From Hyalangium minutum (GTDB taxonomy: Bacteria > Myxococcota > Myxococcia > Myxococcales > Myxococcaceae): a stretch of 62,712 nucleotides of DNA. The position numbers were made by a program, and so were the translations under genes. The notes beneath the pieces are model-generated. The model had not been told where the DNA came from and did no database searches. It saw only the letters and a program-made list of their open reading frames with translations. The stretch lies in contig NZ_JMCB01000033.1 in the NCBI RefSeq assembly GCF_000737315.1, forward strand, positions 1 to 62,712. Direction: 5' to 3'. Positions 37,798 to 57,867 of the stretch are shown here, piece by piece (within the stretch, counting starts at the first letter, position 1; the number at the start of each line of letters is the position of its first letter).

Positions 37798-40749
37798 TCA
37801 GGGGCGGTTCGGGTCGACGGTGAGGCCCATCTCGCGCAGCGCCGCGTGGATGCGCAGGCGGGCCTCGGCCCAAGGCAGGGCCTCCACCCGGTAGCCCGAC
37901 AGCGCGTCGAGCAACTGGGAGCGGTAGCTCGGATTGCCCGGGTCGGCGATCACCACCACGCCCCGGTCATTGTGCGAGCGGATCAACCGCCCCACCCCCT
38001 GGCGCATCAGCAGCAACGCTCGAGGCAGCCGGTACTGGATGAACCCGAGGTACTCACTGCCACCACGGGTCAGCGCCTCCTCGCGCGAGGCCACCAGCGG
38101 CCGGCTCGGAGGCTCCAGCGGCAGCTTGTCGATGAAGACGCACCCCACGCCGCGCCCGGGGATGTCCACGCCTTGCCAGAAGCTCTTGGTACCCAGCAGC
38201 ACCGTGCCCGCGTCCCGCTCCTGTCGTGCCACCAGCGAGCGCCCGTGCCCACGCGTCTGCCGCATGACCTCGATGCCCATCGGCTCCAGCCGGGACTGCA
38301 CCGCGAGTCCCACCCGCTCCATCCGCCGCGTGGAGGCGAACAGGCCCAGCAGTCGTCCGCCCATGGCCTGGGCCAGTCCGGAGATGCGCATCGACGCCCA
38401 CTCCACGAACGGCTCCTCGTGGGCCCGCGGCGCGTCCGTCACCAGCACCACCAGCGCCTGCTCCCGCAGCTTGAAGGGGGAGGGGGCTCGCAGCAGCCGG
38501 GGCGCGGGTGTCTCTCCACGCCCCGACAGTCCCAGGCGCCGTAGGACGAATGGGTTTTCCTGCCCTGTGCTCAGTGTGGCCGAGGTCAGCACCAGCGACC
38601 GCTTCGTCGCCGCGAAGTCGCGCGACACATACGACGAGACGTCGATCGGCTGCGCTCCCACGCTCCACCGGGAGCGCTTGGGCTCCGCCGTGGCCGCGTA
38701 GCACCGGCTCTCTGCAGGCTCTCCCGCCAGTTCTTCCGCCAGCCTCGTCAGATCCGCCAACTCCGAGGCAGCACCCGCCAGCTCGCGCTCGAGCGCTGGC
38801 TGCCGCACCGCCATGTCTGGCATGGCCTCGGGCACGAGCAGTGTCAGCACCTTGTGCACCCGCTGCAGCACCTCGCGCATGTCCTGGAGGGATTCACGGA
38901 GGGGCGCCCACGCGGGCAAGGCCCGCACCGCCGGGGTGATCCGCAGCTCGGGGGCATAGGCCGCCTCGTCCGAGTCCTCGTTGGGCGACGCCGCGGGCTC
39001 GCACAGCGCTGTCACCTGCTCGCCCAGAACCATGGCCATGTTGAACAAGGTGCTCAGAGCGCCATGCAGCTCGTTCATCACCGCGAGACCGATGTCCCGC
39101 CGCGTGCTCACCAGGGCGCGCCGCAGCTCGGCGATGAGGCCTTTCCGGCCATCCCGCCCATTCAGCCGCTCGCTGAGCCGGAGGAAGGTCAGGTCCGACA
39201 GCTCCAGGGTGAGCGCCGTGGTGGCCACATCCTCCACCTCGTGCGCCTCGTCGAGCACCAGGTGATCCAGCTTGGGGTAGCGAGGCGGCCACGCGAAGGC
39301 CAGCGACTGGTTGATGACGAGCACATCCGCCGCCCGCGCCTGCGCCACCGCCGAATGGTAGTAGCACCGGTGGTAGTGCGGGCACCGCTCGCCCAGCGTC
39401 GTCGCCGCCTCGGAGCGCACCGCGGGCACCAGCGTGTTCATCTGCGGGAAGCGCTCGCGGAACCAGTGGCTCAGCCGATCCAGGTCCCCATCCGTGCTGC
39501 GCCGCATGAACGCGCGGAGGTAGGCCCGGGGCGCGCGGGCTTCGTGCCGCATCCCCGGTTCCACCAGTGTCGCGTCCAGCGCGCGGCGGCGGCACAGGTA
39601 GTTCGTCTGGCCCTTGAGCAGCGCGTAGCCGAAGGCGCCCCCGGTGGCACGGTGAAGCCGGGGCAGGTCCTTCTCGATGAGCTGGTCCTGCAGCGTCTTG
39701 GTGTGGGGCGCCACCGCCACCTTGCGCCCGTTGCGCGCCGCGAACAGCGCCGACGGTGCCAGGTACGCCAGGGACTTGCCTGTGCCCGTGCTCGCCTCCA
39801 CCGCGAGCTGACCGCCCTCGGAGAGCGTACGCGCCACCGCCCGCGACATCTCGAGCTGCGCGGGTCGGCTCTTGAAGCCCTCTTCCTGCTTCTCCAGTGC
39901 CCCTCCGGGCCCCAGCAGCGCCGTCACCTCGTCAGCGCGAACCGGCTGCACGGGAGTTCCCGGCTCGGGCTCGGGTGGGGCCTTGGCACCTCCGGCACGC
40001 AGGCGCTCGGGGCGGCCCTGGAGGAACCCTCCGGTGGTCTCCAGCTTGAGAGGCATCGGCTTCGCCCGGCATGCCTCCCATAGGCGGTAGAGCAGCGACA
40101 GCAGCGGTTGCTCCTCCGAGGCGCTGTCCTCGTCCACGGCCGCCTCGCCGGCCTCCGCCTGCGCGAGCCTCAGCGCCGCCTTCGAGCGAGGATCCAGCGT
40201 GGCCAACAGGTCCGCGATGTCATCCGCGCGGCCGTCGCGGATACACCCGTCCATGGCGTGCACCAGCACCGCGTGGGTGGCCAGGCAGTCCGTCACCACG
40301 CGGTGCGCCGTGCGCGGCTTCTGCCCCGCCCACCGCAGCATCGACTCCAGCGAGTGGCTCGACAGCTCCGGGTGCAGGTAGTGCAGCAGCTCGCACGAGT
40401 CGAGCACCGGAGCGCGGATGGGCCCCAGCAAGTCCGGGAGGAAGCCTTTTTCAAAAGGCGCGTTGTGCGCCACCACCGTCCAGCCCCTGAGGGCCTCGCG
40501 CAGCTCGGCGATGTCGCTGCCGAACCGGGGCCGGCCCTCGAGCAGGGCGTCATCGATGCCCGTCAGCCGGCGGATGGTGATGGGCAGGGGCCTCGAGGGC
40601 GAGTACAGCCGGGCGATGCGGCGCACCTCCTGGCCGTTCTCGAAGAAGAGGGCACCCAGCTCGATGACCTCGTCCGTACGGGGATCCAGCCCCGTCGTCT
40701 CGAGATCGAGGAACACATGCCGTGTCAAAAGCTCCGCCGCACTGCCCAT
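37798..40749 (-). CDS. dinG: DnaQ-like 3'-5' exonuclease fused to a DinG-family helicase
   Basis: FLDLETTG, VAHNAPFE, then EASTGTGKS, VLDEAHEV, LTSATL, FWQGVDIPG, QGVGRLIRS. Confidence 0.9.
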   Translation of the reverse strand: MGSAAELLTRHVFLDLETTGLDPRTDEVIELGALFFENGQEVRRIARLYSPSRPLPITIRRLTGIDDALLEGRPRFGSDIAELREALRGWTVVAHNAPFEKGFLPDLLGPIRAPVLDSCELLHYLHPELSSHSLESMLRWAGQKPRTAHRVVTDCLATHAVLVHAMDGCIRDGRADDIADLLATLDPRSKAALRLAQAEAGEAAVDEDSASEEQPLLSLLYRLWEACRAKPMPLKLETTGGFLQGRPERLRAGGAKAPPEPEPGTPVQPVRADEVTALLGPGGALEKQEEGFKSRPAQLEMSRAVARTLSEGGQLAVEASTGTGKSLAYLAPSALFAARNGRKVAVAPHTKTLQDQLIEKDLPRLHRATGGAFGYALLKGQTNYLCRRRALDATLVEPGMRHEARAPRAYLRAFMRRSTDGDLDRLSHWFRERFPQMNTLVPAVRSEAATTLGERCPHYHRCYYHSAVAQARAADVLVINQSLAFAWPPRYPKLDHLVLDEAHEVEDVATTALTLELSDLTFLRLSERLNGRDGRKGLIAELRRALVSTRRDIGLAVMNELHGALSTLFNMAMVLGEQVTALCEPAASPNEDSDEAAYAPELRITPAVRALPAWAPLRESLQDMREVLQRVHKVLTLLVPEAMPDMAVRQPALERELAGAASELADLTRLAEELAGEPAESRCYAATAEPKRSRWSVGAQPIDVSSYVSRDFAATKRSLVLTSATLSTGQENPFVLRRLGLSGRGETPAPRLLRAPSPFKLREQALVVLVTDAPRAHEEPFVEWASMRISGLAQAMGGRLLGLFASTRRMERVGLAVQSRLEPMGIEVMRQTRGHGRSLVARQERDAGTVLLGTKSFWQGVDIPGRGVGCVFIDKLPLEPPSRPLVASREEALTRGGSEYLGFIQYRLPRALLLMRQGVGRLIRSHNDRGVVVIADPGNPSYRSQLLDALSGYRVEALPWAEARLRIHAALREMGLTVDPNRP

Positions 40750-40792: not shown

Positions 40793-41212
40793 TCACTCCA
40801 CCATGAACGCGCCGCTGATCATCTGACCCATCGCGCAGCCGTAGGTAAGGGTCCCCGTCTTGTTCGGGGTGAACGCGATTTCCACGGGGGTGTTGAGGGG
40901 CAGCGGCGTGTTGATGCCGTAGTCCTTCATCACGATCTCCGTGGCGCACGTCTCCTCGGTCTTCCGGGTGACGACCAGCTTCACCGGCTCGTCCTTCTTC
41001 AGCGAGATGGGCGAGGGCTCATAGCCCTTCTCCGTCACGGTGAGCGTAATGACGCGCGGGCCATCGCCCGGCTTGCGAGTCTCGGAGGCCGCTGCGGCGG
41101 GAGGCGTCTCCGCCTTCTGCTCCTTGGAGCACCCCTGCTGCGAGGCGAGGACGGCCCCGGTAGCCGCCAGGGCCAGCAGCGGCTTGATGATCTTCGAGAA
41201 GAAACGTCGCAT
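40793..41212 (-). CDS. cupredoxin-domain exported protein or lipoprotein
   Basis: TVTEKGYEPSPI, TCATEIV, YGCAMGQMISG. Confidence 0.8.
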   Translation of the reverse strand: MRRFFSKIIKPLLALAATGAVLASQQGCSKEQKAETPPAAAASETRKPGDGPRVITLTVTEKGYEPSPISLKKDEPVKLVVTRKTEETCATEIVMKDYGINTPLPLNTPVEIAFTPNKTGTLTYGCAMGQMISGAFMVE

Positions 41213-41223
41213 GGGGTCCTCTT

Positions 41224-42420
41224 CTACTCGGCGGGAGCCGGCTCCGCAGCAGGAGCGGGGGCCGCCTCGAAGCGCAGGATGGCGTGCAGGGGGATGAAGA
41301 CCTCGCTCCCTGGCTCGCCCAGCAGCAGATCGAACCGTCCGGCCTTCTGCAGAGTCATCTTCAAGGTGACGCCGTTGCGGAGCACCAGGCGGACGGGCTG
41401 TCCCACCTGCGGCAGGAAAGGGCGCGGGTCAGAGAACGGGCGCTTGTCCGGCTGACGGGCCACGCTGGCGGGCTTCTGCGTGAGCTTCGGGTCCCGCTCC
41501 AGCGTGGGCAGCAGCTTCTCCCAGTCCGTGCGGCGCGCCAGCAGTACCACCTGGAGCTTCTCCAGGCGTCCGGTGCGCTCGAAGATGAACGCGATGGGCT
41601 CTTCGGTGGTGAGCGTGTCCAGCACGGTGCGCTCACCCAGCACCACCGCCAGCTCTTGCTTCGCGGCCACCAGCCCGGAGAGGAAGTCGGCCACCGCCGC
41701 GTTCTCCACCTCGCCGCGCGCCTGCTTGATGGCGGCCTTGCGCTGGGTGCGCTCTTTGCGCGCCATGAACTCGGCGACCGTCATTCCGCTCTGAACGACG
41801 CCAAACGCGTCTCCGAGCGACAGCCCCGGGTTCTTGCCAATCAGGTCGTACACCTGGTCGAAGCGCTTGGCCTCCTCGGCGTGCAGCTTGCGCCAGATGC
41901 GGCACTTCATCTTCCCTTCGAGCTCACCCTTGGCGATGCGGGCGGGCACGCGCTCGCGCACCGCCAGCGCCTGGACCTGCTCGGGCGTGGGGGGCGGCCG
42001 TGGCGGCCCGCGGGGAGCAAAGCGTCCAGGGCCTCCGGCACGCGGTCCAGCGCCGGGCGCTCCCGGAGGGCCTCGGGGAGGACCTCCAGGCCGGGGCGAC
42101 GGCCGAGGAGAGGGCGAGGCCGCACCGGGAACGGTGGGCCGGGGCGGGGCCGAGGGCACCGGTGCGCCAGAGGCGGCGGGCCGAGGCGTGGGAGCCGGCA
42201 GTGGAGCGCTCGGGGTGGCCGGCCGGGGAGCCGGCGCAGGCACGGGAGCACTGGCTGTGGTGGGCCGGGGCATGGGCGTCGCCGCCGGCCGCGGAGTGGG
42301 AGAAGGGCTAGGGGTGGGGCTCGAGGCCGGGGTAGGCGCCACAGTGCCCGGCGTCGCCGAGGCAGGGCGCCGGATGACCTCGACTGCGGGCACTACCCGC
42401 CGTGGTTTCCGATCGTTCAC
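41224..42420 (-). CDS. hypothetical protein: Pro-rich N-terminus plus probable tandem Sm/Hfq-like domains
   Basis: C-terminal PVRLVLRNGVTLKMTLQKAGRFDLLLGEPGSEVFIPLHAI aligns almost without gaps to the Hfq core ([39 protein letters not shown], recalled from memory). Confidence 0.55.
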   Translation of the reverse strand: MNDRKPRRVVPAVEVIRRPASATPGTVAPTPASSPTPSPSPTPRPAATPMPRPTTASAPVPAPAPRPATPSAPLPAPTPRPAASGAPVPSAPPRPTVPGAASPSPRPSPRPGGPPRGPPGAPGAGPRAGGPGRFAPRGPPRPPPTPEQVQALAVRERVPARIAKGELEGKMKCRIWRKLHAEEAKRFDQVYDLIGKNPGLSLGDAFGVVQSGMTVAEFMARKERTQRKAAIKQARGEVENAAVADFLSGLVAAKQELAVVLGERTVLDTLTTEEPIAFIFERTGRLEKLQVVLLARRTDWEKLLPTLERDPKLTQKPASVARQPDKRPFSDPRPFLPQVGQPVRLVLRNGVTLKMTLQKAGRFDLLLGEPGSEVFIPLHAILRFEAAPAPAAEPAPAE

Positions 42421-42465
42421 GTTCTCACGCTACCTGATAGCCATGAAGGGAGGGAGCACAAGGGC

Positions 42466-42876
42466 TCATGGCTTGAGTGAATCCGATAAATCTACCTTCC
42501 ACCCCGAAGCTTCTCGGACCAGGCGGACCTCGCGAGCCTGTCCCGAGGAGAGCACGCGCACGGTCGCTACGTCCCCCTCCTCACGCACCAACGTAATGTC
42601 CGTAACATCCGCTGGGGGGGCAGAATTCATGAAGAGCAACTCATAAGGCTCCAGGTCCGCCTTGCCGCCCGAAGTGTCCTTCAGCGCCTGGGCCCGGGCC
42701 GTCAGCGCCGTCTGCGTGCCTTGGGACAGTGCGGCATACGCCTCCTTGTACTCCCCGCGCTTCACGTGCTCATGGAAGGAGGTGTAGGCATTTTGCGGCG
42801 TGGTGAACTGGGTCTTCCCACAGCCGCCGAGGGCGAGCAGGGCCAGCACGAGCAGCGGCATCGCGGACAGACGCAT
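42466..42876 (-). CDS. lipoprotein, NTF2-like/DUF4878-like
   Basis: Lipobox LGG-C, TPQNAY...YKEAYAALS, LVREASGWKVD. Confidence 0.65.
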   Translation of the reverse strand: MRLSAMPLLVLALLALGGCGKTQFTTPQNAYTSFHEHVKRGEYKEAYAALSQGTQTALTARAQALKDTSGGKADLEPYELLFMNSAPPADVTDITLVREEGDVATVRVLSSGQAREVRLVREASGWKVDLSDSLKP

Positions 42877-42922: not shown

Positions 42923-43969
42923 CTACTCTTCATGCTGTCGAACGCGGTTGCGGCCTGCTCCCTTGGCCGCATAGAGGCACTCGTCCGCCGAGCGCATGAG
43001 CTCCTCGGGGGTCTGGATGCTGGGAGAGGGGATGGAGGCCAGCCCCAGCGAGGCCGTGCAGCGCACCTCCTTCTTCGTCCCATCAGGAGCTTGATACTCC
43101 AACTGGAGGCCCTCGATGGCCTCGCGCACCCGCTCGCAGGCGCGCAGCGCGTCCGCGGGGCTCGTCTCCGGCAGCAGGGCAATGAGCTCTTCGCCGCCGT
43201 AGCGCGCCAGCATGTCCACCTCGCGCAGCCGCGCCCGCGTCACCTGGGCCACCGCGCGCAGCACCTCGTCCCCGAAGGGGTGCCCGTAGGTGTCGTTGAC
43301 GCGCTTGAAGTAGTCGATGTCCAGCATCACCAGCGACAGCGGCGCGCGGTAGCGCCGGGCGCGGGCGAACTCCTCCTGAATGCGCTCCTCGAAGTAGCGC
43401 CGGTTGCTCAGGCCGGTGAGCGCATCCGTGCGGCTGAGCGCCAACAGCTCCTCGCGCTTGCGGGCCAGCTCCTTGTTGGCCCGGTCCAGCTCGCGGTTCT
43501 TCTCCACCAGTGTGTCCTGCAGGGCCTTGAGCCGCAGCATGGACTTCACCCGCGCGCCCAGCTCCAGCATGTCGAAGGGCTTCACCAGGTAGTCGTCCGC
43601 TCCCAGCTCCAGCCCCTCCACCTTGCCGGCCGCCTGCCGCGCCGTCATCAGGATGACAGGGATGAAGCCGAAGCCCCCGTCGCCCGAGTTGGCCTTGATG
43701 ATGCGGCACACCTCCACCCCGCCCAGGCCCGGCATCTCCACGTCCATGAGGATGAGGTCCGGCCGGTGCTCGCGGATGGCCGACAGCGCCTGCGCGCCGT
43801 CTCTTGCCTCGCGAAAGCGGTAGCCGTGCGGCGCCAGCCCCTGGCGCACGTGCTGCACGTGGGCCGGATCGTCGTCGACGATCAGGACCGTGCGGTCTGA
43901 GTATTCGCCCGGGGCGGCCGCTCGACGGCTGCCCTCGGGGGCCTTCTTGATGGCGCTGCTCTCCGGCAT
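42923..43969 (-). CDS. REC-GGDEF diguanylate cyclase
   Basis: REC domain (LIVDDD, DLILMD, DYLVKP), coiled coil, TDALTGLSNRR, I-site REVD, RYGGEEL. Confidence 0.92.
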   Translation of the reverse strand: MPESSAIKKAPEGSRRAAAPGEYSDRTVLIVDDDPAHVQHVRQGLAPHGYRFREARDGAQALSAIREHRPDLILMDVEMPGLGGVEVCRIIKANSGDGGFGFIPVILMTARQAAGKVEGLELGADDYLVKPFDMLELGARVKSMLRLKALQDTLVEKNRELDRANKELARKREELLALSRTDALTGLSNRRYFEERIQEEFARARRYRAPLSLVMLDIDYFKRVNDTYGHPFGDEVLRAVAQVTRARLREVDMLARYGGEELIALLPETSPADALRACERVREAIEGLQLEYQAPDGTKKEVRCTASLGLASIPSPSIQTPEELMRSADECLYAAKGAGRNRVRQHEE

Positions 43970-44065
43970 CGTCTCCCCCATCCCGAAGAACCCTCCCGCC
44001 GCGCAGGCGTTCCCGGATTCTCTCCAGACAGATGGGGGCTGCCAAGTCACCCCCTTGGTGATTTT

Positions 44066-44686
44066 TCAACCAGGCTTGACGAGTCGGGCCCGGTAGACGG
44101 GCTCCCCACTCTGGAGGTAGCGCCGCTCACGGGTGGAGGGGACTTCCTCGGGATCGTACGGATGGAAGGCGCCCTGCCCGAGGGGATTGTGGAAGCCCGC
44201 CTCCTCGAGGATGGCCAGCATTCCGCGCGCCCTATCCTCCACGTCGGTCCGCAGGTCGAACTTGCCGCCAGGCGCCAGCTTGTTCAAAAGCAGACGGGCG
44301 AAGTCCGGCTGGATGATGGCGCGCTTGAAGTGGGCGCGCTTCCACCATGGATCCGGGAACTGGAGGTGGATGGCGGACAGGGAGCCGTCGGCGAAGATGC
44401 GGGGCACCACGGCGCGTGCGTCGGCTTCAATCACGCGCAGGTTCTTCAGGCCCATCTTGTCGCCACGGTCGAGCGTGTCGCGGGCGTACTTCTTGCGCCA
44501 CTCGAAGGCCACGAAGCGCACGTGGGGGTTGCGGCGACAGTACTCCAGCGCGTGGCCTCCGGCGCCGGAACCCATCTCCAGCTCCAGGGGGCCAGAGAAA
44601 CCGTACTCCGCGTCCCAATCGGGCGGGGCCTCCAGGGTGGTGAACTTCAGGCCGACCGGGTCGGGCAGCAGGCGGGGACGAGCCAT
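44066..44686 (-). CDS. trmB: tRNA (guanine-N7)-methyltransferase
   Basis: LEMGSGAG, FPDPWWKRAHFKR, LRTD, STRERRY. Confidence 0.9.
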   Translation of the reverse strand: MARPRLLPDPVGLKFTTLEAPPDWDAEYGFSGPLELEMGSGAGGHALEYCRRNPHVRFVAFEWRKKYARDTLDRGDKMGLKNLRVIEADARAVVPRIFADGSLSAIHLQFPDPWWKRAHFKRAIIQPDFARLLLNKLAPGGKFDLRTDVEDRARGMLAILEEAGFHNPLGQGAFHPYDPEEVPSTRERRYLQSGEPVYRARLVKPG

Positions 44687-45878: not shown

Positions 45879-47582
45879 ATGTCCGGTCGACTTGGTGAAC
45901 TGCTGGTCCGTGAGAACCTCATCACCGTTCAGGCCCTGCGCAAAGCGCAGGAAGAAAGCCAGAAGAGTGGGGCTCGCATTGGCACCGCTCTCATCAAGAC
46001 GGGTGCCATCGAGGAGTCCAAGCTCACGGACTTCCTCTCCAAGCAGTACGGCGTCCCGGCGATCAACCTGAAGGACTTCGACATCGATCCGGAGATCATC
46101 AAGCTGGTCCCGAAGGATGTCGCCGAGAAGCACCTGGTCATCCCCGTCAACCGCGCGGGCCCGTCGCTGATCGTCGCGATGTGCGATCCGTCCAACATCT
46201 ATGCGGTGGACGACCTGAAGTTCCTCACCGGCTACAACATCGAGTCGGTGGTGGCGTCGGAGATCTCCATCCGCGAGGCCATCGAGCGCTACTACGCGGA
46301 GAAGGGCCCCTCGCTGGACGCCATCGTCGGCGAGATGGCCGACGAGGACATCGAAGTCTCCCAGGCCGAGGACGAGAACATCGAGGAGATGGCCAAGGCC
46401 GCCGACGACGCGCCGGTGGTCAAGCTGGTGAACCTCATCCTCATGGACGCCATCAAGAAGGGCGCGTCCGATATCCACGTGGAGCCCTACGAGAAGGACT
46501 TCCGCGTCCGCTTCCGCATCGACGGCTCGCTCTACGAAGTCATGCGCCCGCCGATGAAGCTGCGCAACGCCATCACCAGCCGTCTGAAGATCATGGCCTC
46601 GCTGGACATCTCCGAGCGCCGTCTGCCGCAGGACGGCCGCATCAAGATCAAGATGGGTGGCGGCAAGGAGATGGACTTCCGCGTCAGCGTGTGCCCCACG
46701 CTGTTCGGCGAAAAAGTGGTTATGCGTCTGTTGGACAAGTCGAACCTCCAGCTCGACATGACGAAGCTGGGCTTCGACCCGCAGCCGCTGGCGTGGTTCA
46801 AGGAGGCCATCGAGCGTCCCTACGGCATGGTGCTCGTGACGGGTCCGACGGGTTCCGGAAAGACGACGACGCTGTACTCGGCGCTCTCTTCGCTCAACCA
46901 GATCGACACCAACATCTCCACCGCGGAAGACCCGGTCGAGTTCAACTTCGCCGGCATCAACCAGGTGCAGATGCATGAAGACATCGGCCTGAACTTCGCC
47001 GCGGCCCTGCGCTCCTTCCTGCGTCAGGACCCCGACATCATCATGATCGGTGAGATCCGTGACTTCGAGACGGGCGAAATCGCGGTGAAGGCGGCGCTCA
47101 CGGGCCACATGGTGCTCTCCACGCTGCACACCAACGACGCCCCTGGCACGGTGAGCCGTCTGCTCAACATGGGCATCGAGCCGTTCCTCGTGGTGGCCTC
47201 GCTCAACCTGATTCTGGCCCAGCGTCTGTGCCGCCGCCTGTGCAAGGACTGCAAGCGCCCGGCGCAGGACGTGGACGAGAAGGCACTCATCGACGCGGGC
47301 GTGCCTCCGGAGAAGATCGGTGCCTTCACCATGTATGAGAAGGTTGGGTGCCGCGAGTGCAACGACCGTGGCTACCGCGGCCGCGTGGCCGTGTATGAAG
47401 TCATGCCCTTCTGGGACGGCCTCAAGGAGCTGGTCATCAACGGCGCCTCCACCAACGAGCTCAAGCAGGAGGCCATCCGCCTGGGCATGAGCTCACTGCG
47501 CATGTCCGCGCTGGCGAAGATGATGGACGGCGTCACCACGCTCGAAGAGGTGGTTGGCAACACCGCTCCGGATCGCTTCTAA
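45879..47582 (+). CDS. pilB: type IV pilus assembly ATPase
   Basis: MSGRLGELLV, ASDIHVEP, GPTGSGKTTT, AEDPVE, LRQDPDIIMIGEIRD, STLHTN. Confidence 0.96.
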   Translation: MSGRLGELLVRENLITVQALRKAQEESQKSGARIGTALIKTGAIEESKLTDFLSKQYGVPAINLKDFDIDPEIIKLVPKDVAEKHLVIPVNRAGPSLIVAMCDPSNIYAVDDLKFLTGYNIESVVASEISIREAIERYYAEKGPSLDAIVGEMADEDIEVSQAEDENIEEMAKAADDAPVVKLVNLILMDAIKKGASDIHVEPYEKDFRVRFRIDGSLYEVMRPPMKLRNAITSRLKIMASLDISERRLPQDGRIKIKMGGGKEMDFRVSVCPTLFGEKVVMRLLDKSNLQLDMTKLGFDPQPLAWFKEAIERPYGMVLVTGPTGSGKTTTLYSALSSLNQIDTNISTAEDPVEFNFAGINQVQMHEDIGLNFAAALRSFLRQDPDIIMIGEIRDFETGEIAVKAALTGHMVLSTLHTNDAPGTVSRLLNMGIEPFLVVASLNLILAQRLCRRLCKDCKRPAQDVDEKALIDAGVPPEKIGAFTMYEKVGCRECNDRGYRGRVAVYEVMPFWDGLKELVINGASTNELKQEAIRLGMSSLRMSALAKMMDGVTTLEEVVGNTAPDRF

Positions 47583-47634
47583 CCGTTTCTTTTTCGTTGC
47601 TCGTCTTACCCTCCGCATCTGAAGGATTTCTTCC

Positions 47635-48741
47635 GTGGCAAACCTGCACCAGCTCCTCAAGGCAATGGTCGAGAAGGGCGCTTCCGACCTGCACATCACC
47701 ACTGGCTCGCCGCCGCAGCTCCGCGTGGACGGTGAGCTGGTGCCGCTGAAGACGGCGCCCCTCACGCCGGTGGAGACCAAGCAGCTCTGCTACTCGATCC
47801 TCACGGACGCCCAGAAGCACAAGTTCGAAGAGGACAACGAGCTGGACTTGTCCTTCGGCGTGAAGGGCCTGTCCCGCTTCCGCGCCAACGTCTACATGCA
47901 GCGTGGCGCGGTGGCCGGCGCGTTCCGGACCATTCCGTTCAAGATCCTCACCTTCGCGGAGCTGGGTCTGCCGCCGGTGGTGGCCGAGCTGGTCAAGCGC
48001 CCCCGCGGCCTCATCCTCGTGACAGGCCCGACAGGCTCGGGCAAGTCCACGACGCTGGCGTCGATGATCGACAAGATCAACACCGACCGTCATGAGCACA
48101 TCATGACGATCGAGGACCCGATCGAGTACCTGCACCCGCACAAGAACTGCCTCGTCAATCAGCGCGAGGTGGGTGCGGACACGCGCAACTTCAAGACGGC
48201 GCTCAAGTACATCCTCCGCCAGGACCCGGACATCGTGCTGGTGGGCGAACTGCGAGACCTGGAGACCATCGAGGCGGCGCTCACCATCGCGGAGACGGGC
48301 CACACCTGCTACGCCACTCTGCACACCAACAGCGCGGTGCAGACCATCAACCGCGTGCTGGACGTGTTCCCGCCGTACCAGCAGCCCCAGGTGCGCGCGC
48401 AGATGTCGTTCGTGCTCGAGGGCGTGATGAGCCAGTCTCTGGTCGCCAAGGCGGGCGGCCCTGGCCGCGTGCTGGCGCTGGAGGTCATGATTCCCACGCC
48501 CGCTATCCGAAACCTCATCCGCGAGGACAAGGTCCACCAGGTCTACTCCTCGATGCAGGTCGGCCAGGCCAAGTACGGCATGCAGACCTTCAACCAGGCC
48601 CTGGCGGCGCTCCTGGCGCGGCGCCTGATCAGCCAGGAGGAGGCCTTCGGCCGGTCCAGTGATCCCGAGGAGTTGCGCAACATTCTGGCCGGTGCTGTAC
48701 CTGGGATGCAGCGGCCAGGCGGCGGAGCCCCCGGCCGTTAG
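47635..48741 (+). CDS. pilT: type IV pilus retraction ATPase
   Basis: ASDLH, GPTGSGKSTT, TIEDPIE, LRQDPD, AIRNLIRE, GMQT. Confidence 0.96.
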   Translation: MANLHQLLKAMVEKGASDLHITTGSPPQLRVDGELVPLKTAPLTPVETKQLCYSILTDAQKHKFEEDNELDLSFGVKGLSRFRANVYMQRGAVAGAFRTIPFKILTFAELGLPPVVAELVKRPRGLILVTGPTGSGKSTTLASMIDKINTDRHEHIMTIEDPIEYLHPHKNCLVNQREVGADTRNFKTALKYILRQDPDIVLVGELRDLETIEAALTIAETGHTCYATLHTNSAVQTINRVLDVFPPYQQPQVRAQMSFVLEGVMSQSLVAKAGGPGRVLALEVMIPTPAIRNLIREDKVHQVYSSMQVGQAKYGMQTFNQALAALLARRLISQEEAFGRSSDPEELRNILAGAVPGMQRPGGGAPGR

Positions 48742-48796
48742 TTATGGGTTTTAGAGACGCGCGGTAGACTGGTTGTCCCCGCGGAGGTCCAGAGTC

Positions 48797-50044
48797 ATGG
48801 CGGCACCTGCAATGCAGAAGACGGCATCATCGGCGAAGAAGGTCACACTGTGGCTCTGGGAGGCCAAGAGTAAGTCCGGCGAGGTCAAAAAGGGCGAGAT
48901 GGAGGCCGGAGACGCCGAGGCGGTCAACGCGCGCCTCAAGTCCTTGGGCCTCAACCCGGTCAAGGTCAAGAAGAAGCCCCTGGAGATCAACATCCCGGGG
49001 CTCGCTGGCGGTGTCACGGGCAAGGACATCCTCATCTTCACCCGTCAGTTCGCGACGATGATCGACGCCGGTCTGCCCCTGGTGCAGTGCTTGGACATTC
49101 TGGGCAGCCAGATGGACAACCCGGCCTTCCGCAAGGTCATCTTCCAGATCAAGGGCAAGGTCGAGCAGGGCTCCACCTTCGCCGACGCGCTCAAGGAGCA
49201 CCCGAAGGTCTTCGACGAGCTCTTCGTGCAGCTGTGCGCCGCGGGCGAGGTGGGCGGTATCCTCGACACCATTCTCAACCGTCTGGCGACCTACCGTGAA
49301 AAGGCCGAGAAGCTGAAGCGCAAGGTGAAGGGCGCGCTGACCTACCCGGTCATCGTTCTCGTGGTGGCCGTGGGCGTGACGGCGCTGCTGCTGCTCAAGG
49401 TGACGCCCGTGTTCGCGAAGATGTTCGGCGACTTCGGCCAGGCGCTGCCAGGACCCACTCAGTTCGTGGTGGACTTGTCCGAGTGGTTGCAGAAGTGGGT
49501 CATCCACCTGGTCGTCAGCATCGCCGCCTTCATTTTCGCCGCTGTCTCGTTCTACAGGAACCCCAAGGGCCGGAAGATCGCCGACAAGGTGATGCTGAAG
49601 ACGCCGCTGGTCGGTGACGTGCTCCGCAAGGTGGCGGTGGCGCGCTTCACCCGGACGCTGGGCACGATGATCTCCTCGGGCGTGCCCATCCTGGACGCGC
49701 TGGACGTGACAGCGAAGACGGCCGGTAACCGCACGGTGGAAGAGGCCATCTACTTCGTCCGCGGGAAGATCGCGGAAGGTAAGAACATCGCCGGCCCACT
49801 GGCGGACACCAACGTGTTCCCCTCCATGGTGGTGCAGATGATTGGCGTGGGCGAGGCCACGGGCGCCATGGACGCGATGCTTACCAAGATCGCCGATTTC
49901 TATGACGACGAGGTGGACGCGGCGGTGGGCAGCCTCACGGCCGCCATCGAGCCTCTGATGATGGTGTTCCTCGGCGTCGTGGTCGGTGGCTTCCTCATCT
50001 CGATGTATCTGCCGATCTTCTCGATCGCCGGTGCCGTCAAGTAG
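48797..50044 (+). CDS. pilC: type IV pilus platform protein
   Basis: FTRQFATMIDAGLPL, AGEVGGILD, ALTYP, MIGVGEATG, MYLPIF. Confidence 0.96.
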   Translation: MAAPAMQKTASSAKKVTLWLWEAKSKSGEVKKGEMEAGDAEAVNARLKSLGLNPVKVKKKPLEINIPGLAGGVTGKDILIFTRQFATMIDAGLPLVQCLDILGSQMDNPAFRKVIFQIKGKVEQGSTFADALKEHPKVFDELFVQLCAAGEVGGILDTILNRLATYREKAEKLKRKVKGALTYPVIVLVVAVGVTALLLLKVTPVFAKMFGDFGQALPGPTQFVVDLSEWLQKWVIHLVVSIAAFIFAAVSFYRNPKGRKIADKVMLKTPLVGDVLRKVAVARFTRTLGTMISSGVPILDALDVTAKTAGNRTVEEAIYFVRGKIAEGKNIAGPLADTNVFPSMVVQMIGVGEATGAMDAMLTKIADFYDDEVDAAVGSLTAAIEPLMMVFLGVVVGGFLISMYLPIFSIAGAVK

Positions 50045-50051
50045 CTCTCAG

Positions 50052-51683
50052 GTGCTCGCTCTTCACCCGGGCGAGGCCGAACTGCGGGTCCGGTTGACGT
50101 GGCTGTCGATCTTCCGGACCATCGCGACCAGCCTGTTGCTGGCGGTGTTCGCGCTGCGGCTGCTCGCGTCCTCCGGGACGCGAGACTTGTCGCGCGAGGA
50201 CTCGCTGGTCTTCCTGGGGATCGGCCTCGTCTACGTCCTCACGCTCATCTACGGCCTGTGGCTCCGCAAGGGGCGCGTGGGCCGCACCGCCGCCGTGGTG
50301 CAGGTGGCGGGAGACATCCTCATCGCCTCGGGCCTCGTGTCCGTGACGGGTGGGGGAGACTCTCCCGTCTCCTTCACCTACTCGCTGGCGGTCATCGCGG
50401 CGTCCATCCTCCTGTCGCAGCGCGGCGCCTTCGTGACGGCGGCGGCCTGCTCGGGGGCGTATGGGGCCATTGTCGGCCAGCACCTGCTGGAGCTGGGCAA
50501 CCACGCTCCCACGGCGATGGTGGTGCGCCTGGGCTTCACGTTCGCCAGCAATGTGCTGGCGTACTTCCTCATCGCCGCGCTGGCGGGCTACCTCAGCCGG
50601 CAGCTGCTGGCGACGGGCGGGCGGCTCTCGGCCAGCCAGGCGGACCTGAAGCGGCTGGCCACGCTCCACGAGCAGATTTTGGACAGCACGCCCTCCGGGC
50701 TCCTCACGTGCGAGGCGGATGGGAGCATCACCTTCATCAACCGCGCGGCGCTCAGCATCCTGGGCATGGAGGGTACGGCCGTGCAGTCCCGGCTGGTGCA
50801 GGAGTTGCTGCCCGGGCTGCCGGAGATGGAGCGGGTGCCTCGTTCCGAGCTGAAGGTGGACACGCCTCGGGGGCATCGCATCTTAGGGCTCACGCTGGCG
50901 CCGCTGGAGGGCACCGGCCGCGCCGCGCGCCTCATCGTCTTCCAGGACCTGACGGCGCTGCGGCGCGCCGAGGATGAGCTGCGGCGGGCGGACCGGCTCG
51001 CGGCGCTGGGGACCCTGGCGGCGCAGTTGGCGCACGAGATTCGCAACCCCCTGGCGGCCATGCGGGGCTCGGCGCAGATGCTGGCGCAGGATGGGGCGGG
51101 AGATCCGGGCTCGCAGCGGCTGACGAACATCCTGCTGCGCGAGTCGGATCGGCTGTCCCGGCTGGTGGAGGAGTTCCTGCGTTTTGCTCGCCCGCCCAAG
51201 CCGCAGCTGCGGCCGGTGGGGCTGGAGCTGCTGGTGCGGCAGCTGATGGAGATGTTGCAGGTGGATCCCCTGAGCCGCGGGGTGGAGCTGGATCTGGACC
51301 TGCAGCCGGTGGCGGCGGCGGTGGACCCGGATCAGGTCCGCCAGGTGCTGCTCAACCTGCTGCGCAACGCCTTCGAGGCGGTGGACTCGAAGGGGAAGGT
51401 GCGGCTGTCCCTGTCGGCCGAGGGGAACATGGCGCGGCTGAGCGTGTGGGACTCGGCCGGCTCCATCCCGGAGTCGAACCTGGGGCGAATCTTCGAGCCT
51501 TTTTTCACCACGCGAAGTGGAGGCACGGGGCTGGGGCTGGCTACGGCATACTCTATCGTGCGGGCGCACGAGGGACGGATGCAGGTGACCTCCTCGCCCG
51601 AGGCGGGGACGGAGTTCGTGGTGGAGCTGCCGCTGGCGGTAGCCTCCGAGGAGGTGCAGGGTGCACGTGCTAGTGGTGGATGA
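50052..51683 (+). CDS. pilS: two-component sensor histidine kinase
   Basis: TM sensor, PAS-like segment, LAHEIRNPL, LNLLRNA, FFTTRSGGTGLGL. Lies between pilC and pilR. Confidence 0.9.
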   Translation: MLALHPGEAELRVRLTWLSIFRTIATSLLLAVFALRLLASSGTRDLSREDSLVFLGIGLVYVLTLIYGLWLRKGRVGRTAAVVQVAGDILIASGLVSVTGGGDSPVSFTYSLAVIAASILLSQRGAFVTAAACSGAYGAIVGQHLLELGNHAPTAMVVRLGFTFASNVLAYFLIAALAGYLSRQLLATGGRLSASQADLKRLATLHEQILDSTPSGLLTCEADGSITFINRAALSILGMEGTAVQSRLVQELLPGLPEMERVPRSELKVDTPRGHRILGLTLAPLEGTGRAARLIVFQDLTALRRAEDELRRADRLAALGTLAAQLAHEIRNPLAAMRGSAQMLAQDGAGDPGSQRLTNILLRESDRLSRLVEEFLRFARPPKPQLRPVGLELLVRQLMEMLQVDPLSRGVELDLDLQPVAAAVDPDQVRQVLLNLLRNAFEAVDSKGKVRLSLSAEGNMARLSVWDSAGSIPESNLGRIFEPFFTTRSGGTGLGLATAYSIVRAHEGRMQVTSSPEAGTEFVVELPLAVASEEVQGARASGG

Positions 51684-53055
51684 CGAGCTGTCGATGCGCG
51701 AGTACCTCGAGATGCTGCTGTCTCGAGGGGGCTACCGCGTGAGTGTCGCTGGGAGCGAGAAGGCCGCTGTCGATGCGTTGAGCGCGGGCGGGGTGGACGT
51801 CGTCATCTCGGACATGAAGCTGGGCGGGGGCAGCGGGTTGAACGTGCTGAAGGCGGCGCGCTCCCAGTCGGCGCCGCCCGAGGTCATCCTCATCACCGCG
51901 TTTGGGACGCCAGCCGCGGCCGTGGAAGCGATGCGGGCGGGGGCGTACGATTACATCTGCAAGCCCTTCGACAACGAAGAGCTGAAGCTGCTGGTGCAGA
52001 AGGCGCTGGAGAAGCGCGGGCTGCGCGAGGAGAACCGGCACCTGCGCCGTTCGCTGAGCGGCATGCGCGGGCTGTGGGTGGGCGAGAGCCCGGCGATGCA
52101 GGAGGTCTGGGGGCTGGTGGAGAAGGTGGCGCCCAGCCGCACCACGGTGCTCATTACCGGCGAGAGCGGCACGGGCAAGGAACTGGTGGCCCGCGCGCTC
52201 CACCTGCGGAGCACCCGGGCGGGGGCGCCGTTCCTGCCGGTGAACTGCGCGGCGATCAACGAGGGCGTGCTGGAGAGCGAGCTGTTTGGCCACATAAAGG
52301 GTGCGTTCACGGGAGCGCAGACGGATCGCTCGGGCATCCTGGTGTCTGCGGGAGAGGGGACGGTATTCCTGGACGAAATCGGCGAGGTGCCGATGTCCAC
52401 GCAGGTGAAGCTGCTGCGCGTGCTCCAGGAGCGGCGGGTGAAGCCGGTGGGCAGCTCCACGGAGGTGCCGTTCAACGCGCGCGTGGTGGCGGCCACCAAC
52501 AAGCGGCTGGAGGTGGAGGTGAAGGCGGGCCGCTTCCGCGAGGACTTGCTCTACCGGCTCAACGTCATCACGGTGGATCTGCCGCCGCTGCGCGACCGCA
52601 CGGGGGACATTCCGCTGCTGGCGCGCCACTTCCTGATGCAGATGCGCGAGGAACTGGGCAAGCCGAACCTGGACTTCTCCCGGGAGGCGATCGAGGTGCT
52701 CGAGCGCTACTCGTTCCCGGGCAACGTGCGGCAGCTGCAGAACATCGTGGAGCGCGCGGCGACGCTGGCGGATGTGGACGTGCTGGGGCCGGACACGCTG
52801 CCCTCCGCGCTGCGCGGTGAGCGGGAGTCGGAGCAGCAGGCAGCGGGTACGGTGGAACTGCCGACAGGTTTCTCGCTGGAGCGGTACCTCGACGATGCCG
52901 AGCGGCGGTATCTGCTGGCGGCGCTGCAGCGAGCCGGAGGCGTGAAGACGCGCGCGGCGGATCTGCTGGGGCTGAGCTTCCGCTCCTTCCGGTACCGGGC
53001 GGCCAAGCACGGCCTGGGGGACCGCGAGGACGGCGGCGACACCGGGCAGGCGTAG
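51661..53055 (+). CDS. pilR: sigma54-dependent response regulator
   Basis: REC domain, GESGTGKE, ESELFGHIKGAFTGA, FLDEIGE, FREDLLYRLNV, FPGNVRQL, C-terminal HTH. Confidence 0.93.
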   Translation: MHVLVVDDELSMREYLEMLLSRGGYRVSVAGSEKAAVDALSAGGVDVVISDMKLGGGSGLNVLKAARSQSAPPEVILITAFGTPAAAVEAMRAGAYDYICKPFDNEELKLLVQKALEKRGLREENRHLRRSLSGMRGLWVGESPAMQEVWGLVEKVAPSRTTVLITGESGTGKELVARALHLRSTRAGAPFLPVNCAAINEGVLESELFGHIKGAFTGAQTDRSGILVSAGEGTVFLDEIGEVPMSTQVKLLRVLQERRVKPVGSSTEVPFNARVVAATNKRLEVEVKAGRFREDLLYRLNVITVDLPPLRDRTGDIPLLARHFLMQMREELGKPNLDFSREAIEVLERYSFPGNVRQLQNIVERAATLADVDVLGPDTLPSALRGERESEQQAAGTVELPTGFSLERYLDDAERRYLLAALQRAGGVKTRAADLLGLSFRSFRYRAAKHGLGDREDGGDTGQA

Positions 53056-53067
53056 GGACGGTATCGC

Positions 53068-54816
53068 CTACGGGGCGAGCACCTTGCGCAGCCAGGCCTC
53101 CAGGGTGATGAGGAGCCAGATCTTCACCCCATGGCGCGGGCGCAGGCCGCCCAGCTTGCCGGAGAGCAGCCGCTCCAGCCACGCGCGGTCGAACAGCTCC
53201 CACCGTGGGAGCCCGTCCAGCAGCCGTTGGCGTGCCTGCGGCAGCAGCGGGCCCTGGAACCAGCCCTCGACGGGCACGAGCATGCCGCTCTTGGGCCGCT
53301 CGATGATGTCGCGCGGCAGGAGGTCCTCCACGGCGCGCTTGAGCAGGTACTTCTCCACCGAACCCTTGAGCTTGATCTGCGGTGGCGCGCGAAAGGCCAC
53401 CTCCGCCACGCGCTCGTCGAACAACGGTGCCCGAGGGAGCATGCCGAACGGGGCGCTGACCTCGTCCACCTTGTGCAGAATGTGGTGGGCGCCCTTGAGG
53501 ATCAGGTTGAGCGCCATCAGCTTGCCTACGAAGGTCTTCCAGCGGGGATCGGTGAAGAGGGGGACCAGCGAGGCCTCGATGGGCTGGGCCGCGAGCGCCT
53601 CCTTCATCTTCCGCGAGAGCGCCAGGTCGAAGTCATCGAAGCACTTGAGGTGGGCTCGCAGGTAGCTCCGCTCTCGCGCGAGCGACGCGTCTTCGGCTCC
53701 CGCGACGTCTCCGTACAACTCCGCCAGCAGCATCGGCAGGTTCTTCGGCCCTCCGAAGCAGGGATCGCCGCCCTCGCCGTTGAGCACCACGCCCACCTCC
53801 GCGCTCGCCTCGCGGAAGAGCAGTGCGTTGGGCACGGTCAACGGGTCTCCAATGGGATCCGAGTGCAGCGCGATCGTCTCGTCCAGGTGGTGGACGATGA
53901 CCTGAGGAGACAGCTCCACGATGCGGTGGGTGGTGCGGCAATGGTCGGCAACGAGGGTGCTGAATGGCAGCTCGTTTCGGTACTCGGGGCCGAACGAGAC
54001 CGACCAGGTGATGACCTCCTGGTCATGCAGCCGCTTCGCCAGCGCGACCACGAGACTGGAGTCCAGCCCTCCCGAGAGGAATGCGCCCACCTTCTCGCCC
54101 GAGGGCAGCCTGCGATGGACGGCTCCCTCCAACTCCACCCGCAGCTGCTGGCGCAGGGCCTCCTCGCTTTCCGGAGGAAGGGGAGCGCTCGCGTCCACCT
54201 CTTCCGGCACGGACCAGAATGACTCGCGGCGGGGAGCGCCTCCTCCAAGCGGCAGGTGCACTACCTCGCCCGGCAAGACCTCCAGGACGCCTTCCACGAG
54301 GGTCTCTTCGCCGGGGAGATACGCATAGCTGAGGTACGTCGCGACGCCGCGCAGATGGAGCCGACGTGGGACGAGGCCACTGGCCAGCAGCGCATGGATC
54401 GTCGAGGCGAAGATCCATCCCTGGGGCACCTTCGAGTAGTAGAGCGTCCGCTCGCCGATGGCGTCCCGCGAGAGCCGGAGCTCGCCGTCGGACACCCACG
54501 CGAGCGCAAACGCCCCGTTCACCTCGGACAGGCGGCCTGCCGCCACGAGAGCCCTCCACTGAGAGAGTTCCTCGAGGCGCTTGCCGTCCAGCCAGCACGC
54601 GTCCCAGTCCGCGACGAGCGCTGAGCCCTGCGCCGGGGAGAGCACCTGGGCTCCAGGCCCCAGGGAGCGCACCATGGCCTCCGAGGCGCTTCGGGCTTGC
54701 TCGGGAGACACGGCGGTGGAGACGAGGCCACCCACGCGCCCGGTAGGGCGGCGGCGGGTCACTCCCGTTCCGAACGGTGGTCCCGGCTTGGGCTTGAGCA
54801 ACAGCGGTTCTGGCAT
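53068..54816 (-). CDS. asparagine-synthetase-like ATP-dependent amide ligase, copy 2 (glutaminase domain degenerate)
   Basis: RDAIGERTLYY, FASTIHAL, AFLSGGLDSS, LNGEGGD, RAPLFD, KYLLK, RPKSGM. No N-terminal Cys and no NGEIYN. Confidence 0.85.
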   Translation of the reverse strand: MPEPLLLKPKPGPPFGTGVTRRRPTGRVGGLVSTAVSPEQARSASEAMVRSLGPGAQVLSPAQGSALVADWDACWLDGKRLEELSQWRALVAAGRLSEVNGAFALAWVSDGELRLSRDAIGERTLYYSKVPQGWIFASTIHALLASGLVPRRLHLRGVATYLSYAYLPGEETLVEGVLEVLPGEVVHLPLGGGAPRRESFWSVPEEVDASAPLPPESEEALRQQLRVELEGAVHRRLPSGEKVGAFLSGGLDSSLVVALAKRLHDQEVITWSVSFGPEYRNELPFSTLVADHCRTTHRIVELSPQVIVHHLDETIALHSDPIGDPLTVPNALLFREASAEVGVVLNGEGGDPCFGGPKNLPMLLAELYGDVAGAEDASLARERSYLRAHLKCFDDFDLALSRKMKEALAAQPIEASLVPLFTDPRWKTFVGKLMALNLILKGAHHILHKVDEVSAPFGMLPRAPLFDERVAEVAFRAPPQIKLKGSVEKYLLKRAVEDLLPRDIIERPKSGMLVPVEGWFQGPLLPQARQRLLDGLPRWELFDRAWLERLLSGKLGGLRPRHGVKIWLLITLEAWLRKVLAP

Positions 54817-54818
54817 GA

Positions 54819-57826: not shown

Positions 57827-57867
57827 GCGTCCCCCTCGGTAGGGCCTGTTGCGGGGGACGGACAGTA

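Follow-up and report, generated by a model that had tools for sequence, protein, structure and literature searches.

The window analysed here, positions 1 to 62,712 (nucleotides, nt) of contig NZ_JMCB01000033.1 of Hyalangium minutum, harbours on its minus strand an open reading frame (ORF) at 41224-42420 whose 398-amino-acid (aa) product ends in a domain of the Hfq type of the Sm fold. This ORF is a real and conserved gene. Since a stop codon lies four codons 5' of its GTG, the latter is the earliest possible start, and the codon-position guanine-cytosine (GC) content of the folded part (residues 144 to 398; 0.73/0.44/0.90 in a genome of 70% GC) bears the signature of a coding sequence. A plus-strand ORF at 41284-42480 was considered as well and rejected as a real gene because it is devoid of coding codon-position GC and because it is the minus-strand product which is conserved. 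The modules of the protein and the genes surrounding it are compiled in Table 1.

Table 1. Modules of the studied protein and neighbouring genes within the window (CDS, coding sequence; AF2, AlphaFold2; pLDDT, predicted local distance difference test).
Feature	Residues	Position	Strand	Remarks
Whole CDS	1-398	41224..42420	-	398 aa; GTG start at 42420, TAG stop 41224-41226
Conserved N-terminal peptide MNDRKPRRVVPAVEVIRRP	1-19	42364..42420	-	in-frame conservation
Pro/Ala/Thr/Ser-rich low-complexity spacer	20-110	42091..42363	-	composition; gap-filled alignment
Arg/Gly/Pro-rich segment PGGPPRGPPGAPGAGPRAGGPGRFAPRGPPRPP	111-143	41992..42090	-	family pattern G.RPGG(F).R...PRPPPT
Basic all-helical domain	144-238	41707..41991	-	AF2 helices, pLDDT about 85-96
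Middle domain (putative second Sm unit)	239-306	41503..41706	-	helix and five short strands, then helix (AF2)
Basic Pro-rich linker LERDPKLTQKPASVARQPDKRPFSDPRP	307-334	41419..41502	-	highly conserved; pLDDT > 90
Hfq-type Sm domain	335-386	41263..41418	-	LRNG (Sm1), PLHAI (Sm2)
Short Ala/Pro/Glu-rich C-terminal tail	387-398	41227..41262	-	low pLDDT
Predicted lipoprotein gene		42466-42876	-	136 aa; no Pfam match; adjoins the studied gene upstream
Response regulator gene (GGDEF domain)		42923-44050		co-directional with the studied gene; two genes upstream
trmB		44066-44686		co-directional with the studied gene
Cupredoxin-like lipoprotein gene		40793-41212		co-directional; starts 11 nt past the stop of the studied gene
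DinG-like exonuclease-helicase gene		37798-40749		co-directional with the studied gene
Type IV pilus block		45879-53055	+	pilB (T2SSE + MshEN), pilT, pilC (T2SSF), pilS, pilR

The C-terminal Hfq-type domain

The core of the C-terminal domain is made up of V343-x-x-x-L347-R-N349-G350, F363-D-L-L-L367 and P377-L378-H379-A-I, the spacing from N349 to H379 amounting to 30 residues as in Bacillus subtilis Hfq and thus to one residue more than in Escherichia coli Hfq. When the whole protein and three fragments thereof were used as single-sequence queries against Pfam, NCBIfam and the PDB, only low-complexity noise was returned. At E <= 10, a profile built from the last 73 residues of 34 family members (profile A2) matched 37 different PDB sequences, all of which (37/37) belong to Hfq or Hfq-like proteins. 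Highest in rank are the Hfq-like protein of M. jannaschii (5dy9; 1.7e-4) and B. subtilis Hfq (3ahu; 6e-4), followed by the Hfq proteins of Listeria (4e-3) and Aquifex (5e-3). Comparison by hhalign with a small Hfq alignment, which consisted of the E. coli and B. subtilis sequences plus the proteins P0164, P0165 and P0168, gave a probability of 97.4% (E 1.2e-11, 65 columns), a figure which is somewhat biased since the latter three members had come from the A2 profile search. This library-wide search reaches them at E 8e-5 to 3.5e-4, and all three pass the Pfam Hfq cut-off: P0164, matched by Pfam Hfq at E 2e-49, is a canonical Hfq in tandem, P0168 is a 76-aa Hfq, and P0165 has a second unit which shares 37% identity with the C-terminal domain studied here, VGRFDLLL being common to both. 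Within the family itself, three of the 34 members match Pfam Hfq (PF17209) singly, the best of them at E 2.3e-4.

A structural model of residues 144 to 398, calculated by AF2 from 78 aligned sequences, reached a pLDDT of 92.2 and a predicted template-modelling score (pTM) of 0.78. Its C-terminal unit comprises a short helix (H190-195, fragment numbering) and five strands. Upon comparison of the model with the PDB by Foldseek, ranks 2 to 50 are occupied exclusively by Hfq chains (probability 1.00, target TM about 0.7), the superposition yielding a root-mean-square deviation (rmsd) of about 2.1 Å over about 60 residues at 22-30% identity. We hold it to be very probable that the C-terminal 50 to 65 residues are homologous to Hfq, and the model predicts that they fold as Hfq does; by fold and by profile, the domain is in the Hfq branch of the Sm superfamily. 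The pTM value indicates a fixed arrangement of the modelled domains and is uninformative with respect to a ring. An earlier note on this DNA, made from the bare letters, had described the last domain as following the Hfq core strand by strand with one extra residue, had pointed out that the YKH motif of Hfq is changed to PLH and had named AlphaFold and Foldseek as the means by which an Sm-like fold could be recognised. The profile matches, the residues P377-L378-H379 and the modelled fold agree with it in all of these respects.

Transferred to E. coli Hfq numbering in the hhalign register, the conservation of the barrel turns out to be selective. The Asn-Gly turn of Sm1 is present, with R348, N349 and G350 invariant in 78/78 aligned sequences and L347 nearly so. 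The Sm2 signature [YF]-K-H-A-I-[ST], on the other hand, is not matched, the corresponding stretch reading P377-L378-H379-A380-I381-L382. Here, the invariant P377 takes the place of Y55 and the nearly invariant L378 that of K56, while H379, which corresponds to H57, is invariant and A380 nearly invariant. The proximal uridine pocket (Q8, Q41, F42, K56, H57) is not intact. F42 and H57 are kept, the former as the conserved F363 (F or Y in the family), while Q8 is exchanged for D331, an invariant Asp in the family, and Q41 for R362 (R or P in the family), the exchange of K56 having been mentioned above. Likewise, the distal A-rich site (Y25, I30, K31, Q52, T61) is not intact, as V346 and T352, both at positions variable in the family, replace Y25 and K31, and R383 replaces T61. 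The arginine rim (R16, R17, R19) is absent, V339 and G340 being found at the first two positions and a gap at the third. R348, D364 and P377 constitute the family's own invariant barrel residues. Since most of the contact residues are not conserved, the protein, if it binds RNA at all, must do so in another mode than E. coli Hfq.

With bacterial Hfq (PF17209; E. coli, B. subtilis YmaH, M. jannaschii) the domain has in common the helix followed by five bent strands, the N-G turn of Sm1, the aromatic residue at position F42 and the H-A-I of Sm2, with loops that match those of the B. subtilis protein. Bacterial Hfq, however, is a single-domain protein of 70 to 110 aa, whereas the 398-aa protein of the window contains five additional modules and carries its Sm domain at the C-terminus. 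As it has no Pfam Hfq match, has lost the YKH motif along with the lysine, the tyrosine and the rim, and is not a small single-domain protein, we regard it as an Hfq-domain protein of new architecture and not as a canonical Hfq.

Helical domain, middle domain and N-terminal region

The most conserved part of the protein is its helical domain, which shows a mean column identity of 79%, contains 27 invariant residues and bears a net charge of +7. No credible match to it was found among PDB sequences or in Pfam, and a Foldseek comparison of the full model with viral structures gave high-rmsd matches only. The linker preceding the Sm domain is more conserved than the C-terminal barrel itself, K316, P317, R322, P324, R327, S330, D331, P332 and R333 being invariant. 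According to hhalign, its segment P324-P334 aligns to positions 1 to 11 of E. coli Hfq. The linker replaces most of the N-terminal helix by which bacterial Hfq begins, and the model displays there merely a short helix of six residues following the Pro-rich stretch. The C-terminal tail is acidic and variable in the homologues (alignment columns 501-521).

With regard to the middle domain, the earlier note had suspected a second, degenerate copy of the Hfq core. The segment FLSGL...VVLLARR on which this suggestion was founded is indeed present (residues 246-297, about 41530-41685), and in the full AF2 model residues 241-296 adopt a helix and five strands at a pLDDT of 95-98 (H98-109, E113-118, E122-130, E134-137, E141-144 and E148-153, fragment numbering). 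The alternating strand and loop lengths, 6-3-9-2-6-3-5-1-7, nearly coincide with those of E. coli Hfq, 6-2-9-2-6-3-5-2-7. While the architecture of the proposed copy is therefore reproduced by the model, a sequence similarity to Hfq or to the C-terminal domain is not found. Hhalign comparisons of the middle domain with the C-terminal domain, with the Hfq alignment and with P0165 yielded probabilities below 5%, and its profile has no match in the PDB. A single hhalign match between the middle and the C-terminal domain was discarded as no real similarity since it consists of six residues common to the overlapping fragment ends. Folded alone, the middle domain reached a pLDDT of 70 with three strands, and Foldseek assigned to this isolated model best matches which are mostly Hfq, albeit not significant (E >= 1.2, probability <= 0.63). 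From the full model we consider the middle domain likely to be a second Sm-like barrel. That a confident prediction is obtained for it only as part of the entire protein suggests that it packs on the C-terminal barrel.

Two Sm/Hfq units per chain characterise the tandem Hfq proteins P0164 and P0165, the second such unit of the window protein being a putative one. In P0164 and P0165, the repeat is visible in the sequence and Pfam Hfq matches two stretches of each, unlike in the window protein. Both have a length of about 150 aa and contain neither a helical domain nor a disordered N-terminus. P0165, of 153 aa, is a singleton from one metagenome contig (L083, Logan SRR28232403), and a homologue search for it in a collection of 5.8 billion proteins returned P0165 itself only. 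Its gene adjoins one with a TubC_N docking domain, a domain typical of myxobacterial non-ribosomal peptide synthetases.

Residues 1-143 consist to 34% of Pro, 17% of Ala, 12% of Arg and 9% of Gly and carry a net charge of +16, so that a Pro/Arg/Gly-rich N-terminus followed by a basic helical domain, as described in the earlier note, is what the sequence contains. When the reading frame was extended upstream in 81 related loci, 22 of which end at a contig edge, the motif (V/M)NDRKxRR..P.VEVIRRP was found in frame directly after the first possible start in 54 of the 59 untruncated loci. Because of this in-frame conservation we take the long form including residues 1-143 to be the real product and reject the possibility that the long N-terminus merely reflects a frame left open by the high GC content. 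Across the loci, the motif is separated from the folded part by 43 to 183 aa, and the spacer in between (residues 20-110) varies between species in both length and sequence. The pattern of the Arg/Gly/Pro-rich segment is kept in homologues at 58-80% identity, its repeats being mostly of the RPGG type and not classical RGG. In the last 45 residues before the fold, homologues contain 12-20% R and 10-33% G.

Low-complexity regions joined to an Sm barrel are not without precedent. The eukaryotic proteins SmD1, SmD3, LSm4 and LSm14/Scd6 combine the barrel with an Arg/Gly-rich region or with extra domains, and function in RNA binding and granules; they have no sequence relationship to the window protein beyond the Sm fold, and its Arg/Gly/Pro-rich segment is N-terminal. 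Among bacteria, Acinetobacter and Moraxella Hfq, with their glycine-rich C-termini, and Burkholderia Hfq2 consist of an Hfq core and a long low-complexity extension. In these, unlike in the window protein, the core is canonical and N-terminal, and neither a second barrel nor a helical domain is present.

Public start-codon calls for the gene are inconsistent, as the annotated homologues measure between 226 and 431 aa (247 aa in many Myxococcus xanthus entries), and many gene models drop the N-terminal peptide together with the whole disordered region. In the 22 of 81 loci which are truncated, mostly from draft genomes, the contig breaks off within the proline-rich coding region or shortly before it (contig-end loci L010-L013, L017-L020, L027-L029, L031, L034 and L037-L040). 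It seems that the very GC-rich, repetitive spacer breaks short-read assemblies, which may explain many 'partial' database entries.

Homologues and genomic neighbourhood

A homologue search with residues 144-398 as query returned 501 proteins at E <= 1e-3. All named homologues belong to Myxococcus, Corallococcus, Pyxidicoccus, Stigmatella, Archangium, Cystobacter, Vitiosangium or related metagenome-assembled genomes (MAGs), genera which we take to be the same group as the Cystobacterineae. At NCBI these are labelled as hypothetical proteins, while the JGI pipeline has assigned to at least 11 of them the label 'sRNA-binding regulator protein Hfq'. In a scan of one genome per species, relatives were detected in 153 species genomes. 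The best 80 of these 153, for which genera and identities are known, belong to Myxococcus, Corallococcus, Pyxidicoccus, Hyalangium, Archangium, Cystobacter, Vitiosangium and related MAGs (Myxococcaceae/Archangiaceae-type), the closest being from Hyalangium at 88-92% identity. The protein family is narrow since just 49 out of 1.84 billion representative proteins reach E <= 1e-3 with the profile of the C-terminal domain. Across the 78 aligned sequences, 47 columns are invariant.

Some of the matches deserve separate mention. Records labelled Comamonas sp. KCTC 72670 / JC664 (L021, BNCN01000001.1; P0019) carry the gene at 77% identity, and L021 exhibits the full gene order of the pil region; here, the organism name looks wrong, or the assembly looks like that of a myxobacterium. 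P0169 (L082, Logan SRR21903018 contig) is a distant relative of 248 aa (E 6.8e-4) in which a helical region is followed by an Sm-like end. Its gene is flanked by an AhpC-like and an RdgC gene, and this different context implies that the family may extend beyond the pil-linked locus. P0161, P0166 and P0167, also returned by the profile search of representative proteins, look like false positives caused by repeats or low complexity and were set aside.

Beyond trmB, the studied gene is followed in the upstream direction by ribF and then by pilB, pilT, pilC, pilS (a 6TM_PilS histidine kinase) and pilR (a sigma-54 activator). This pilus gene block flanks the gene in all related genomes as well, and wherever a related locus offers enough flank, pilB is found at a distance of 2.4-4 kb, even at 58-62% identity. 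In 56 related loci, that is in nearly all with enough upstream flank, the gene of the 136-aa lipoprotein lies directly upstream, down to an identity of 34-39%. Many of the more distant loci lack the GGDEF regulator gene. Proteobacterial hfq is typically found in a miaA-hfq-hflX context, from which the neighbours of the studied gene differ. A scan for consensus promoters and terminators around the gene gave nothing useful.

Two further regions of the window were noticed. Right after pilR, genes for two asparagine-synthase-like proteins and for a DEAD-box RNA helicase, together with an ORF of 443 aa unmatched in Pfam, are located on the minus strand at 53068-59124; M. xanthus carries pilA at this position. 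On the plus strand, tandem genes for SrpI-like encapsulin shell proteins with a cyclic-nucleotide-binding domain are located at 21569-22975 and 23016-24425. Both show strong antisense matches to Rfam RF02735, 'Saccharopolyspora sRNA 350', a family which probably does no more than mirror the conserved coding sequence.

The Pxr pathway and the possible role of the protein

In M. xanthus, the small RNA (sRNA) Pxr controls the entry into multicellular development. The abstract of Chen et al. 2019 reportedly calls Mxan_5793 a 'novel gene' which was taken up into the Pxr pathway in the Cystobacterineae and is confined to this suborder, with which the genera of the 80 best relatives agree. For Pxr itself, too, an origin in this suborder has been reported (PMC8538405). 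We consider it quite probable that Mxan_5793 is the M. xanthus orthologue of the gene studied here. The order pilB, ribF, trmB, GGDEF regulator, lipoprotein, studied gene, cupredoxin, dinG-like recurs unchanged in genomes of Myxococcus stipitatus and other Myxococcus, and the folded part of the protein is 78-79% identical to that encoded by Myxococcus loci including M. xanthus AM003. In M. xanthus, pilB is MXAN_5788 (PMC9765702) and the 348-aa GGDEF regulator is MXAN_5791 (PMC4686200). As the tags 5788 and 5791 run one per gene along this order, continuing the count over the last two steps leads to MXAN_5793.

A genetic connection with an sRNA, as is familiar from bacterial Hfq, has been reported for MXAN_5793 too. 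In a 2026 preprint, the gene is said, with reference to Chen et al. 2019, to be one that "affects Pxr-S function", and insertions in it are described as raising starvation-induced and lowering glycerol-induced sporulation (bioRxiv 10.64898/2026.08.28.747804). According to another publication, the 2019 screen searched for transposon insertions by which a strain arrested by constitutive Pxr regains development, and a further gene named from it encodes RNase D (PMC10217877). M. xanthus and other myxobacteria have been stated to possess no hfq homologue, and another chaperone-like protein has been speculated upon (PMC5684412). The absence of Hfq from M. xanthus was repeated in 2025 in a study which mapped site-specific sRNA-mRNA pairing in this species by an RNA interactome (bioRxiv 10.1101/2025.09.11.675593). 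The statement in the earlier note that myxobacteria have no annotated hfq is thus borne out by the literature. A six-frame scan of the window for a canonical Hfq bearing [YF]KHAI yielded spurious frames only, and in the full-text literature searched for Hfq in myxobacteria and for MXAN_5793, no paper was found that joins this gene to Hfq.

Taken together, these data lead us to the reading, to which we assign a probability of about 0.6, that the gene encodes a lineage-specific multi-domain RNA-binding protein of the Hfq family which belongs to the Pxr sRNA pathway. The reported link of MXAN_5793 to Pxr-S fits such a role. For the more specific assumption that the protein binds RNA directly and acts as an sRNA matchmaker, we see even odds. 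Several points speak against this reading. The window protein and its isolated domains match no Pfam or NCBIfam Hfq model, even at E <= 10. As judged from the sequence, the canonical RNA-contact residues of Hfq are mostly lost, solely F42 (F363) and H57 (H379) being kept. The putative second Sm-like unit of the model is without sequence support and is poorly predicted in isolation. Furthermore, MXAN_5793 has been identified by gene order and locus-tag numbering and not by a tagged sequence record, and its effect on Pxr is known from one sentence in a preprint and from what the abstract of Chen et al. 2019 reportedly says. Finally, polar effects of the insertions on the cupredoxin and dinG-like genes downstream are conceivable, the first of which begins 11 nt past the stop codon.

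Among the alternatives, the one which concerns the domain itself can be dealt with most readily. A convergent or chance similarity of small β-barrels, with the protein being unrelated to Hfq, would agree with single-sequence searches finding nothing, with an identity to Hfq of just 20-30% and with a Foldseek E-value of about 1e-2 for the multi-domain query. Such a coincidence is nevertheless highly improbable in view of the profile matches in the PDB, which comprise Hfq and no other barrel, of the hhalign probability and of the counterparts of NG, F42 and HAI, which occur in the same register and with the loop lengths of B. subtilis Hfq. In addition, intermediates such as P0165 bridge the gap between the family and Pfam-positive Hfq. 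A different objection accepts the barrel as such and takes the protein for a general nucleic-acid-binding or scaffold protein of the nucleoid, the ribosome or RNA degradation, in which binding would be accomplished by the basic helical domain and the Arg/Gly/Pro-rich region and the barrels would serve for self-assembly only, without any sRNA matchmaking. The helical domain, at once basic and the most conserved part, the charge of the disordered N-terminus and the degenerate state of the classical Hfq pockets are all in keeping with this, and RNase D, named from the same screen in the publication cited above, would suit a role in RNA processing or turnover. Yet F363 and H379 are kept at the uridine pocket, and R348, D364 and P377 are invariant, which suggests a conserved functional barrel surface. 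Moreover, the wording of the preprint refers to the function of Pxr-S and not to its amount. We therefore rate a mere scaffold as unlikely.

The vicinity of the pilus genes raises the further question of whether the Sm barrel might be a protein-binding module which cooperates with the type IV pilus machinery, the effect on Pxr and development being indirect. Besides the constant distance to pilB and the presence of pilT, pilC, pilS and pilR in the window, the exchange of most Hfq RNA-contact residues and the GGDEF response regulator two genes upstream can be adduced in favour of this. A precedent is provided by the cyanobacterial Hfq Ssr3341 of Synechocystis, which, like the studied protein, diverges from the enterobacterial model and which binds PilB1, its localisation at the pilus base being needed for function (PMC7690835). 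However, this Hfq is a small single-domain protein, and the PilB1 domain to which it binds is said to be found only in cyanobacteria (PMC7690835). In addition, the proximity to pilB may simply reflect a gene order inherited within one family and no functional link, since the housekeeping genes ribF and trmB lie in between and both strands are used, the GGDEF gene is missing from many distant loci, and the one phenotype reported concerns Pxr-S function and not motility. On balance, a pilus module has in our estimation a small chance of being the correct explanation.

Under the reading as a multi-domain Hfq-family protein of the Pxr pathway, the protein would be cytoplasmic and would bind RNA as a partner of Pxr, perhaps also of further sRNAs. 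It would bind Pxr-S and/or its targets and be needed for sRNA action, a role which elsewhere among bacteria falls to Hfq. Within one chain, both Sm-like units may be arranged side by side via the usual contacts of strand 4 and strand 5, and a few chains could then close a ring built of tandem units. RNA would probably be held by the pocket around F363 and H379 together with new basic surfaces, more than by the classical Hfq pockets. As such surfaces, the invariant RQPxKRPxSDPR linker, R344/R348, the helical domain and the Arg/Gly-rich segment come into consideration. The proline-rich spacer with its tip peptide might serve to tether the protein to a partner. Going further, and only tentatively, MXAN_5793-type proteins may be the missing sRNA chaperone of the fruiting myxobacteria, that is, a rebuilt Hfq which with two Sm barrels per chain forms a trimeric, pseudo-hexameric ring, uses its tail for tethering or clustering and supports a pairing of Pxr-S by which development is gated.

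The similarity to Hfq has already been visible to the automatic annotation of the JGI, so that the homology as such is not an entirely new observation. The new element appears to be its connection to a gene of the Pxr pathway and to the statement that Myxococcus has no Hfq. The question which protein, if any, fills the role of Hfq in M. xanthus is being asked in the field (PMC5684412; bioRxiv 10.1101/2025.09.11.675593). Two facts are joined here, namely that MXAN_5793, reported to affect Pxr-S, quite probably encodes an Hfq domain, and that this domain is embedded in a new architecture and presents altered RNA-binding faces. This provides a concrete candidate for an sRNA chaperone along with specific residues to test, and the family would exemplify an Hfq fold which has been rebuilt in one bacterial lineage. 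If the proposal holds true, an MXAN_5793-type protein would be required for Pxr-S, and perhaps for other sRNAs, to pair and to gate multicellular development.

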